A DNA stretch of 64,000 nucleotides from Blastocystis sp. Blastoise (GCA_039096225.1 JBBPEB010000033.1:744001-808000); one strand, 5' to 3'; counted from the stretch's first letter, positions 6,555 to 56,825 are shown. Program-made: numbers and translations. Notes: generated by a model from the letters alone, not told the origin.

Positions 6555-9067
6555 ATGGCTTTTAAAAACACCCTTTCTGCTGTACTGGTCAATATATTTG
6601 CTGGATGTATCACCGGTTATAATACCGCTGTTGTCAGTGGTCTCGCTTATCCTTTGATTAAGTGTACTATTTTTGAAACTGAAATGTCTGAAGATGAAGT
6701 TTCTGTTTATCAAGGACTCTTCAATGCTTTGATTCTCGTATTTGCTATGTTTGGTTCTATGATGTCTCCTGCCATCGTAAGAGCATTTGGAATTAGAGGA
6801 GCTGCTCTCACCATGAGTATTATTGCTACTATTTGCCCTATTGTCATGGTTCTCTATAAGAATTTCTGGTATATGGCTATTATTCGTGGTTTATGTGGTA
6901 TGTATTTACTTTTTAAACTATACATTAATTATTATACGATTTATAATAAATAAAATATATTTCTATCTATATATACTTTTATAATTTAATGTATATATTT
7001 TTTAGGTCTTGCTGTTGGTATGGTGGGTAACTTTGGACCTATCTACAGTGATACTTATCTTGATCCTGCTACTAGAACCAGAACTAAATCTGTTATTCAA
7101 TTTGCTATCACCTTATCAATTATTGTTGCTGTATGTGTTTAATAAATCATGATAATTTTTATTTTTTCCTCTTTGGTTTTCCTTTTTTCTGTGTTTTTTT
7201 TTCTTGTGTTTTCTCTATATTTTATGTTTATTCTATTGATTTGATATAGTATATCTTTAATTATTTCTTCACACCTTCTTATACTACCACATCATGTACT
7301 CCTTTAACTACTTTCCAATATACTCTTCAATTTGCAATTGGTGCCGTTTTCCCTATATTATTAATGATCACTCTTCTTATTCCCGTTAAGCCTTGTATTT
7401 AATTATTTAATATTTTTATAAATACATATTATATATATTTATATATATATTTTTTATAGATGTTCCTGTTTCAACTGTTGATACCACTAAGTCTTCGTAT
7501 ATATAAATTTTATATCTAAAACATTATTAATTATAATATATTATATATATAGAGTAACTGTTCCTGAATCAAAACCTGTTGAAACTACTCAATCTTCTGA
7601 ATCTACAACTGCTCCTAGTGCTTCTATTGCTGAAGCTGTTGAAGATGCTTCTCCTAATTCTGTTGGTAATCTTGATAATCACTCTGGTATGACTCCTTTA
7701 AGAACTCCTAAAACACCTGGCTCTATTCTTCATCAAAAGAAAGAATCTATATATTCTTGTAAAGTATGTTATATATATATTCTTTTTTGTTTTGATTTTT
7801 TTTTGTTTTATATCACTTTTTGTTTTTGTTTGTTTTATATCACTTTTTGCTTTTGTTTGTTTTAAATATTGTTAATCAATTTTAAAATAAAAATTTCTAT
7901 ATATAATATTTTATAGAATATTAAATATATTTTCTTTATTATTATGCTTGCTGCTGTTAATCAATTAACTGGTGTAAATGGAGTCATTTTCTATGCTCAA
8001 CAAATCTTATCTGGTGCTGGTATTGAAGATGTATATATATATATTTATTATTATTATTATTATTATTATTAATAATAATAATAATATTATTATTATTATT
8101 ATTTAAAAGGATTCTAATATATATTCTATAGGCTTTATTAGCTTCTATTTATGTTGTTGCTTTATGGAATTGTCTTACTGTTTTTGTCTACATCTTTATT
8201 TGTGATCGTCTTACTTCTACTACTATTCTTAATATCTCTTTAAGTATTATGATTGTTGGATCTGCCTTCCTAGTCGTGTCGTATGTTATCTATTTATATA
8301 GTATTATTTTATCATCATTTTTATTTATATTTATTTATAATTTATATTTGTATATTATATTGTAATACACATGATTTTATTTAATATTATTATATTTTAA
8401 ACAAAAAAAAAAAATATATATATATATATATTATTTATTTATAGATTCTTTGGAAGTGATATTATTTTCTTTGCCTTTGCTGGTATGATGTTATATCTCT
8501 TAGGTTATGAAAGTGGTACTGGTCCCATCTTCTATGTAGTATCAAGTGAAGGATTACCTCCTGAATTATTAGGTATATATAAACTATAATATATATAATA
8601 ATACATATCATATTCTTTATATATACTATATTTTATATACTATTTTTATAAATGATATATATATATAGAACAAGGTTTATCATTAGCTAATACTTTACTT
8701 TATGTATTTAATATTGTTATCTCCTTCACATTCCCTATTTTACGTGTTAATATTGGTGCTAATTATACATTTATTATTCTTATTCTCATTCAAGTCTTAT
8801 GTATGATCTATTTCAACGTCTATGCTTGGTATATATTCTATATTCATTATTATTTTATTTATTATATTATTTATTTTTTTATATTATTTATTTATTATAT
8901 TATTTATTTATTATATTATTTATTTATTAGTATTTTATTTATTATTTTATTATATTATTTATTTATTTATTATTTATTAATTATTTATTTATTATTTATT
9001 AATATTTAATATATATAGTAGTAATAAGTCTAAGAAATCTACTAGTGCCCAAACTCCTAAGATCTAA
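6555..9067 (+). CDS. MFS sugar porter family transporter (9 introns)
   Basis: N-terminal GYNTAVVSG. Spliced exon at ~7917-8030 encodes NQLTGVNGVIFYA (sugar-porter TM7 signature), later GTGPIFYVVSSEGLP. All junctions are GT-AG and in frame; stop TAA 9065-9067. Confidence 0.85.
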
Positions 9068-9546
9068 AAAAATGAGTATCACAAAAACATAATTTTATTT
9101 TTCATAAATAAAACGTATAACTATATTGTGTTTGTGTTTTCATTTTTTGTATATTATCATATTATCTGCTTTATATATTATCTTTTTGAATCTTTAACTT
9201 TTATATATATACAAAGAGTATCTTGTTTCACTATAAATTTTTTCTTATTTACTTTATTTTACTCTTGTATTCAATTTCTTTTATAAAAAATCATTTGAAA
9301 TTATACATTTTAATGTATATTATTTTCTTTTATGCTTTATTGTTGTTGCATTAAATTAATAATAATTATCTTTTATTTTTCTTTGTGTTTTGTTACATAT
9401 TGCGATAACTGTTAAATTATAAATGAAATGAGAAAAATCACAAAAAAATAGATATATTTATATAAGATAGAATTTATAAATAAAAACAAATGTTTATAAT
9501 GAAAACAAAAAGAATATGTATTAATAGAGTTATATAAGAAATATAT

Positions 9547-54705: not shown

Positions 54706-55387
54706 TATGAAATAGAAAGAACAATATTTATTTAAAAAAAAAGAAATTTGTTATTTTTTTTTATAAACAATTTTTTATTTTCTATAATAGTTATATGGGT
54801 TTAGTAACTATTATACAAAGCTTTAAAATACATATACAAATAAAATAAAATGTATCAGAATTTCAGTTGAATTTTATTAAGAAAACAGGTCAAGAGGTAT
54901 GTTGTACGAATGTAATAACATTATATGAGTCATTTACATAATTCTAAGATAATAAAAGAATTAAAGTCAGTTCATTTCGATTTTTGAAAAATATAAGTTT
55001 TATATAAGATTATTACTGTCGAGTTTTATTATATAAATAGCAATTCGAAAATTTACGAAAAATATTATTTTGTATTTATATATGGATGTATAACATAGTA
55101 CAGATAATTTAATGAATAGTTTCAATATCCATTACGCAGAGTGGCATGGAAATGATGCATGAAAATCATTTTTTAGGATTAATTTTTATGTAAAATGCAT
55201 GAGAACATTTTAGTGAAACTAATAATTTAGATGCTAATAAAAACAACACAATCTATAAATAAACGAAACAAAGAGAGAAACACACAAATTTTTTTTTTGT
55301 TCTTCGTTATTTTACGTGATATATCAGTAATAAGTAGGTAGGAAACGTGAATATATATACGAACGTATTATTTACACAAGTTTGAAA

Positions 55388-56825
55388 ATGGGAAACTTTT
55401 CTTCTTGTATTTATAAAGGTTCAAGTCGATATTTGAGATTATCATCTAGCAAATCTTCAAAGCTTCATGATATAGTTACTTCTACAAACTTCAAATGGAT
55501 TGACAAAGAGGATTATAAAATACCTACATATTTATTCACAAATGTCAAGTATATATGATTAGAATAGATTGATGGTTACAAATATACTATTATTATATAG
55601 TGCTAAAGTGTTTATAATCTATTGTCATGCAAATGGAGAAGTTTTGGATGATCAGTTGATAACACTATATAAGTATACTTGGGAAAGGTTTGGTATTCCA
55701 ACAAATGCTATTTTATTTGAATATCCTGGTTATGGATTGATGAAAGGAGAAGCTACAACAAAAGGATGTTATACATGTCTTTGTGATGTAGTAGACTATA
55801 TTATGTCTATAAATGACAAACATTTACCTATTATATTGTATATATTATAGATTATTTTATTAAATAATTTTTTTGTTTATTATTTTTATTATTGTTGTTG
55901 TTAATATATATAAATATGTATATATATATATATATATATAGGCATGGTCGCTCTATAGGTGCTGCATTTGCTAGTCGTTATGCATCAGAAAATGATATTA
56001 TAGATGGTATTATATTAGAAACACCTTTTTCAAGTATTCATTCTATATTTTCGGGGTGTTGTATCAGTTTACGTTGTTGTTGTCCGGATATATTATGTAG
56101 TGAATATTTACATTTAATTAAAGTACCAAAATTAATGATTTATGGAACGAAAGATCCGTTAAATCCACAAAAATCTCAAGATGTATCCTGTTTTTTATTT
56201 TTATTTTTAATAATCGTATTATATGATTTTAAAAATAATAATAAATATAATATATAATATATAATATATAATATATAATATATAATATATAATATATAAT
56301 ATATATATATAATATATAATATATAATATATAATATATAATATATAATATATAATATATAATATATAATATATAATATATAATATATAATATATAATATA
56401 TAATATATAATATATAATATATAATATATAATATATATATATAATATATAATATATAATATATAGGAATTATTAGAATATTTTGATACAGAAGATCATGT
56501 GCTTCGTCTAGCTAATTTTAGTCATAATAATATTCCATTTGGAAGTAAAAAATCTAAATTATTATGTTGTATTCCTCATACATGTTGTTGTATGGTAATT
56601 CCTCCAGTTTCTGGTCAACAGAAGAAATATTTTGAAATATTTAAAGAATATATCACTTCTATTATATCCATGACGTTAACAGATTATATAGATACAACTG
56701 TGAATACAGATATAGTTATTACATCTATAATAGTACCAGATTGTGGACAAAATAAAGTTTCAGAATCTCTAGTTAATCAAGAAATGATTCCTCAAGTTCA
56801 AAATGATGAGTATATTGAAGAATAA
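55388..56825 (+). CDS. Alpha/beta hydrolase, ABHD17/ABHD13-like
   Basis: MGNFSSC (lipidation-type N-terminus), YCHANGE, EYPGYG, GRSIG nucleophile, YGTKD, SHNNI; 3 introns. Confidence 0.82.
56247..56463. repeat. Intronic (ATATAAT)n heptamer array
   Basis: Tandem 7-mer filling the 3' half of intron 56183-56465. Confidence 0.9.

Follow-up and report, generated by a model that had tools for sequence, protein, structure and literature searches.

We analysed a 64,000-nucleotide window from the genome of Blastocystis sp. Blastoise (isolate Rus-B; JBBPEB010000033.1:744001-808000), a gut protist of tortoises, in which many introns carry alternating (AT)n runs abutting the splice dinucleotides. An initial annotation had cited seven introns bracketed in this way, and all seven have such ends exactly where it placed them. 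Comparison with related Blastocystis shows that a GTAYG or GTARG donor, T..A at -10/-8 and a terminal TAG have given way to GTATAT(AT)n and (TA)nTAG. The introns and genes on which the argument turns are these.

13723-14023 (+): kinase gene, GT-AG intron with (AT)n at its two ends; gene model only
18506-18644 (-): SAHH intron 3, AT run at the donor, placed where a GC-rich relative has a GTACG intron of 33 nt; spliced alignment
19017-19150 (-): SAHH intron 2, at the position of a 30-nt GTATG intron in the GC-rich relative; spliced alignment
20066-20109 (-): SAHH intron 1, short and without an AT run, at the position of a 35-nt intron in the GC-rich relative; spliced alignment
25072-25121 (+): 50-nt intron with an (AT)n bracket; gene model only
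26221-32121 (+): cytosolic leucyl-tRNA synthetase (LeuRS) gene with 22 introns, the main test gene; gene model and spliced alignment
26239-26335 (+): LeuRS intron 1, with the GTAAGT donor of the 5'-proximal type, yet a TATAG 3' end; gene model, with a counterpart in relative L059 by inspection
26345-26384 (+): LeuRS intron 2, GTAAGT donor, preceded by a 9-nt microexon; gene model, with an L059 counterpart by inspection
29468-29563 (+): LeuRS intron with long (AT)n runs at donor and acceptor, orthologous to a 31-nt GTATGT intron; spliced alignment
31797-31874 (+): LeuRS intron, (AT)n at both ends, orthologous to a 32-nt GTAAGT intron; spliced alignment
31979-32052 (+): LeuRS U12-type AT-AC intron, ends without a bracket; spliced alignment
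34746-34795 (-): bracketed intron of 50 nt, close to the 3' end of a CSB/ERCC6-like helicase gene; gene model only
34831-34868 (-): 38-nt intron with a predicted 14-bp AU hairpin; gene model and fold
36091-36249 (-): 159-nt intron of almost pure (AT)n, its run length uncertain in a nanopore assembly; gene model
46244-46284 (-): 41-nt intron, the first in a kinase gene, with a GTAAGT donor and without AT runs; gene model
61148-61190 (-): 5'-proximal 43-nt intron, GTAAGA donor and pyrimidine-rich 3' end; first-pass model only

The statistics given here for Blastoise introns come from a gene finder written for this work, which in its first pass used GT and AG only and then learned matrices. It was applied to 244 kb of the window's contig (C22:564001-808000) and to two 10-kb pieces elsewhere. 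It returned 559 predicted introns in 76 genes, with a median intron of 106 nt, a median internal exon of 124 nt and an intron GC content of about 8% among GC-richer exons. The picture is unchanged for the 375 introns that the finder recovered without matrices as well.

Intron boundaries were checked by spliced alignment of Blastocystis proteins from relatives to the genes of the window. Alignment and gene model gave identical introns in 17 of 20 cases for LeuRS, 3 of 3 for SAHH and 4 of 5 for Ap4A phosphorylase; the three LeuRS mismatches are a shift within a glutamate run, an intron lacking an in-frame AG and the AT-AC intron, which is beyond the model's reach. Removal of the GT-AG introns restores the reading frame conserved in the relatives' proteins. 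Among the 24 alignment-matched introns, 21 start with GTATA and 22 end with TATAG. The GenBank SAHH protein KAK8791032.1 agrees with our SAHH model, and a relative's mRNA contig (L038) has no introns at the SAHH intron positions, both being indirect as to splicing.

Two splice sites in the assembly carry an unexpected base. LeuRS intron 31394-31500 (+), at a position common to L059, has a GT donor but an AT end where homology needs AG, and the odd base is the spliced-mRNA base, as a polishing error would give. An intron within RRM2 of the U2AF65 gene (L018 4022-4173, -) begins TT where homology needs GT, and here too the odd base is that of the mRNA. The GenBank U2AF65 protein KAK8789834.1, which is without part of RRM2, is probably mis-annotated.

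The full bracket is the strong end of a genome-wide tendency, since a literal 8-nt bracket stands at both ends of only 34 of the window's 129 introns and 136 of the 559 overall (24%). An 8-nt run is present at the donor in half of the introns and at the acceptor in 38%, and at least one long AT end is found in 63%. GTATAT starts 66% of the predicted introns, only 11% of all introns have G at +5, and T occupies positions -3, -5 and -7 in 92, 88 and 81%, respectively. Across the 33.3-Mb, 34-contig assembly, a 12-nt plus 12-nt bracket with a gap of 10-40 nt matched 1,336 times, against 33 for a reversed control.

The donors depart from both known types of 5' splice site, the NN/GURAG and AG/GU classes, which are anchored by +5G or by an exonic AG (PMC11732430). 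Loss of +5G does go with more exonic G at -1 (26% vs 12%), which is the known direction. However, 77% of Blastoise donors have neither anchor, and compensation apparently comes from +6 to +8, where TAT is present in 70% of +5A donors and 11% of +5G donors. The number of matches to U1 is about equal in +5A and +5G donors (6.59 vs 6.52), and matches to U6 number 3.5 and 3.2.

The signals also change along genes. Donors with +5G make up 29% of first introns and 4% of those at rank 5 or higher; with distance from the start codon the mean donor run lengthens from 4.9 nt to roughly 11 nt, the share of +5G drops from some 25% to 3%, intron length goes up and GC goes down. The initial annotation had assigned normal donors to a second, 5'-proximal intron class. 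The position effect holds, but the separate class does not: the gradient from the gene start is smooth over about 800 nt, which rules out two discrete classes. Most first introns are without +5G, and some internal introns retain it (7764, 8281, 59419). The gradient may stem from a stronger demand for U1 near the cap or from a promoter-proximal chromatin zone.

The introns themselves sit at old positions. The U2-type introns of other Blastocystis lineages are about 30 nt long (PMC5608401, PMC12129017), and introns of 24-35 nt occur in relatives at the same codon and phase. Of 13 LeuRS introns, 9 are matched in this way by alignment and a further 3 by inspection; for SAHH the figure is 3 of 3 and for Ap4A phosphorylase 5 of 6. 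These counterparts indicate that the positions are ancient. Recent insertion of the introner type is rejected, nearly all of the relatives' introns occupying positions that are used in Blastoise too. Eight aligned GT-AG LeuRS introns are without a counterpart in one relative, through gain or loss. A GC-rich (52-56%) Blastocystis-like lineage (L038, L046-L051), with SAHH 89% identical and introns of 30-35 nt, has the same head-to-head SAHH/Ap4A phosphorylase pair as Blastoise; L038 is a spliced transcript contig of this lineage that covers both genes.

Blastoise and its relatives share intron positions, phases, GT-AG ends, the TAG acceptor and the want of a tract next to AG, whereas the remaining signals differ. 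In the relatives (29 introns) +5G stands at 72%, T at -10 at 76% and A at -8 at 69%; Blastoise has the lower +5G frequency given above, a median intron of 106 rather than 30 nt, no branch-like T at -10 and AT runs at both ends. Few of the 29 have a pyrimidine run right before AG, so that the missing AG-proximal tract is partly a trait of the genus. The claim that (AT)n stands in place of a polypyrimidine tract thus describes in part a feature that the relatives share. We take the AT ends as derived in the tortoise lineage because they are absent from all sampled relatives, in a comparison that is unrooted. Sequence searches found no sequence of two other tortoise isolates. The tortoise genome paper describes longer and more variable introns and more low-complexity DNA (PMC12129017), and text searches of it returned nothing on intron-end sequence.

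Could the runs be a neutral by-product? AT mutation pressure would supply GTAT and ATAG seeds, selection would keep the seeds, and slippage would extend them. A balance of slippage and point mutation should give geometric run lengths, 11.8-12.7% of the genome is low complexity (PMC12129017), and interior alternation and exon GC3 (G+C at third codon positions) change in parallel with the 5'-to-3' donor gradient. However, seeds in intron interiors, antisense, intergenic and exonic DNA extend far less. GTAT-seeded runs reach at least 11 nt at 33% of true donors, against 5% in intron interiors, 4% in antisense and 1% in intergenic DNA, and ATAG-seeded runs do so at 28% of true acceptors, against 2%, 3% and less than 1%. 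Runs at both ends continue with a probability of about 0.75 per dinucleotide from 3 to 19 nt; inside introns the value is 0.19, rising to 0.56. Neutral simulations with a fixed GTAT gave a first-step continuation of 0.16-0.27, about 0.2 in settings that fit the interior curve; this was a simple model run on small samples, yet the distance to 0.75 is large. The enrichment beyond slippage from a GTAT or ATAG seed on which the reading of the initial annotation depended is supported, and a purely neutral protected seed is rejected. The runs call for selection close to the splice sites or for a mutational process that is local to these sites and outside the model, and the AT runs at splice sites look selected. 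We regard neutrality as improbable, though it is the best placed of the alternatives.

Two further origins of the runs were discarded. A general effect of boundaries between coding and non-coding DNA fails because alternation is 0.67 at donors and 0.64 at acceptors, against 0.40 after stop codons and 0.25 before start codons. Selection against new cryptic GT sites does not guard the runs either, as G-for-A breaks at donors are not depleted. Breaks in acceptor runs fall at A positions in 77% of cases, compared with 66% in the interior, and put C for A more often than G for A (75 vs 27), a pattern that fits reading of U or pyrimidine rather than A-U or G-U pairing.

The next alternative in order of likelihood, and again an improbable one, is that of the initial annotation: (AU)n ends would pair with each other, bridge the splice sites and serve as the default means of intron definition. 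The precedent is the (AC)m-(GT)n introns of teleosts and lamprey, in which the arms lie within 40 nt of the sites and which make up 0.09-2.29% of introns (PMC4691745); pairing and independence of U2AF2 were shown there by experiment (Lin et al. 2016, PMC4691745). Blastoise introns resemble these in having dinucleotide repeats at both ends, no clear pyrimidine tract and arms that could be complementary. The fish system employs two distinct repeats and covers no more than about 2% of introns. In Blastoise a single self-complementary repeat abuts GT and AG, most introns have a long AT run at one end or both, and the ends pair no better than swapped ones.

Some of our results do favour pairing. 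The predicted fold of 34831-34868 (-), described as a near-perfect hairpin, has indeed 14 bp and -10.9 kcal/mol at 37 °C, and short doubly bracketed introns have 5-6 predicted bridging pairs. The lengths of 5' and 3' runs covary (rho 0.15-0.23), and a partial correlation of 0.15-0.23 persists after control for position, length and interior composition; the odds ratio for two long ends in one intron is about 2. Within-intron covariation exceeds that across exons, with an interval that excludes zero, for one of two measures; when it is set against skip pairs, neither does. Permutation within gene and distance bin gave p values of 0.001-0.17, by measure and subset. Covariation within introns is weak, and much of it is owed to gene and position.

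The structural predictions go against pairing as the default. Both ends are bracketed in only a quarter of introns, and predicted bridging pairs between the terminal 14 nt number 1.86 in real introns; swapping in the 3' end of another intron gives 1.72 (p = 0.22). Four or more pairs are reached in 18% of introns. In two-intron folds, bridging (1.22 bp) exceeds exon looping (0.69) but is itself exceeded by skip pairing (1.80), since an (AU)n run is self-complementary and can pair with whatever run lies nearby. Moreover, a helix would hide the donor bases needed by U1 and U6 and the bases just before AG, and breaks in acceptor runs favour C over the wobble-compatible G. On the swapped-end and skip-pairing results we reject pairing as the default mechanism.

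Third among the alternatives, and unlikely, is a role at the DNA level: ApT runs at exon flanks would position nucleosomes, or serve an AMT1/MTA1-type N6-methyladenine (6mA) methyltransferase as linker substrate, and splicing would merely tolerate them. The genome has an AMT1/MTA1-like MT-A70 methyltransferase gene with the DPPW motif (L076; G000:C26:170076-173240, -), the sole MT-A70 match found, so that METTL3 and METTL14 are perhaps missing or broken up by introns beyond detection. The internal exon length of 124 nt and the strand symmetry of the runs would suit such a role, U12-type donor motifs are followed by AT runs about twice as often as a control (59 vs 28), and the run-poor 5' zone coincides with the usual place of 6mA and of trimethylated histone H3 lysine 4 (H3K4me3) (10.1101/2024.10.28.620566). 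In other protists AMT1/MTA1-like enzymes mark ApT just after start sites. However, that is where the Blastoise runs are shortest, and AMT1 usually disfavours ApT flanked by A or T; the runs also adjoin GT and AG directly, and those that follow stop codons are weaker (0.40, against 0.67 at donors). Finally, the pattern is very unlikely to be an artefact of assembling AT-rich DNA from nanopore R9 reads: the data are R9 with short-read polishing, and two splice-site Gs (one in the LeuRS 31394 intron) read as the spliced-mRNA base hint at polishing errors at junctions, but a basecaller is blind to splice sites, the anchoring, T/A asymmetry and gene gradient are unexpected from read error, and doubt is limited to the lengths of the longest runs.

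The splicing machinery is complete in the components sought. U1 (5' AUACUUACCU), U2 (GUAGUA), U6 (ACAGAGA) and U5 loop 1 have canonical pairing motifs, and searches of the genome for small nuclear RNAs (snRNAs) found no variant U1 or U6 fitted to the new donor. Genes for U2AF65, SF1 and METTL16 are present, as is a ZnF-UHM-ZnF gene of the U2AF35 family (C2:443.6-444.3 kb), assigned by domain order only, which excludes loss of any of the four. The initial annotation had marked the U1 5' end, U2AF65 and U2AF35 for inspection; none appears to be lost, and U2AF65 is altered. Its RRM1 has His in place of the RNP2 Tyr and Leu in place of the second RNP1 Phe, residues that are retained in nearly all of 13 homologues; Y152 of human U2AF65 stacks on uracil (PMC7408900). 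The AU-repeat-binding factor that had been invoked is possible, as RRM1 of U2AF65 is altered. Truncated U2 snRNA copies lacking the 5' part (L007, C16:1277488) occur alongside three full copies of identical score.

We favour, with a probability of about one half, a derived (UA)n sequence signal that is selected at each end separately, with extended U1/U6 pairing at +6 to +8, and place it ahead of neutrality, default pairing, a chromatin role and artefact. The introns would be of the usual major-spliceosome kind and would have kept their ancestral positions, while the AT-rich tortoise lineage gave them new end signals, each end being read alone as single-stranded (UA)n. At the donor, UAU at +6 to +8 would pair with the U1 5' end and with the AUAC before the U6 ACAGA box, which would compensate for the loss of +5G. 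The acceptor would have alternating U's in place of the U tract, and a putative protein reader, most likely U2AF65 with its altered RRM1, would recognize them. Run length would come from slippage, with interruptions near the sites removed by selection, and introns near the gene start would have remained short and nearer to the old consensus. Hairpins in some short introns would be a by-product or a minor aid.

Several points weigh against this reading. Most introns in the sample are predictions. Run continuation is steady past +8, which U1/U6 pairing alone cannot explain, and a small covariation of run lengths is left after the controls described above. Four branch-point motifs scanned near intron 3' ends gave no clear positional peak. 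A large sequence search found no full-length U2AF65 identifiable as of a human subtype, and the RRM1 changes may for that reason be genus-wide. A more far-reaching version, which we hold only tentatively, is that the tortoise lineage uses (UA)n as a new default code for its splice sites. The runs would take over from the +5G contact as well as from the pyrimidine tract, a putative re-specified U2AF65 or other dedicated factor would read them, AU helices that bridge the intron would aid short introns, and the canonical core would be kept.

Recognition of UA-rich introns is a feature of plants. It is also described for Paramecium (PMC8997360). Blastoise introns are likewise marked by composition against GC-richer exons, but here the signal is a phased alternating repeat fixed on the splice dinucleotides. 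Literature searches found no description of this AT-end pattern; the rewriting of splice signals in one lineage is real and apparently undescribed. With about three quarters of donors having neither +5G nor an exonic AG, the presumed anchors of most major-class donors, and the U1 and U6 motifs unchanged, Blastoise provides a natural test of how far extended pairing at +6 to +8 or proteins can sustain the choice of 5' splice sites. The 30-nt introns at the same positions in relatives allow a before-and-after comparison of splice signals under extreme AT pressure, and U2AF65 is a candidate case of a protein altering its RNA specificity.

Some further features of the introns and the window deserve mention. 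The introns of C22:564001-808000 have strand-polarised triplets, (TTA)n exceeding (TAA)n 11-fold in their 5' halves and 5-fold in their 3' halves, and AG is depleted in their final 25 nt. The combination of an ATATCC or GTATCC donor with a CCTTAA branch site, characteristic of minor U12-type introns, occurs in 31979-32052 alone and not in the AT-bracketed introns. Blastocystis ST1 and ST7 are known to have minor introns, and in the Blastoise genome a candidate U12 snRNA at C24:844725 scored 46.8 bits, short of the cut-off. A word search with the open reading frame at 41897-44395 gave nothing useful. Elsewhere in the window, a 1,509-residue open frame with Ig-like and F5/8 domains spans 440-4969 (+), and four introns interrupt the NTPase_I-T (YjjX-like) gene at 53838-54705 (-). 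A tRNA-Lys(CTT) gene at 32345-32418 (+) separates LeuRS from a gene for a PKA-like kinase.

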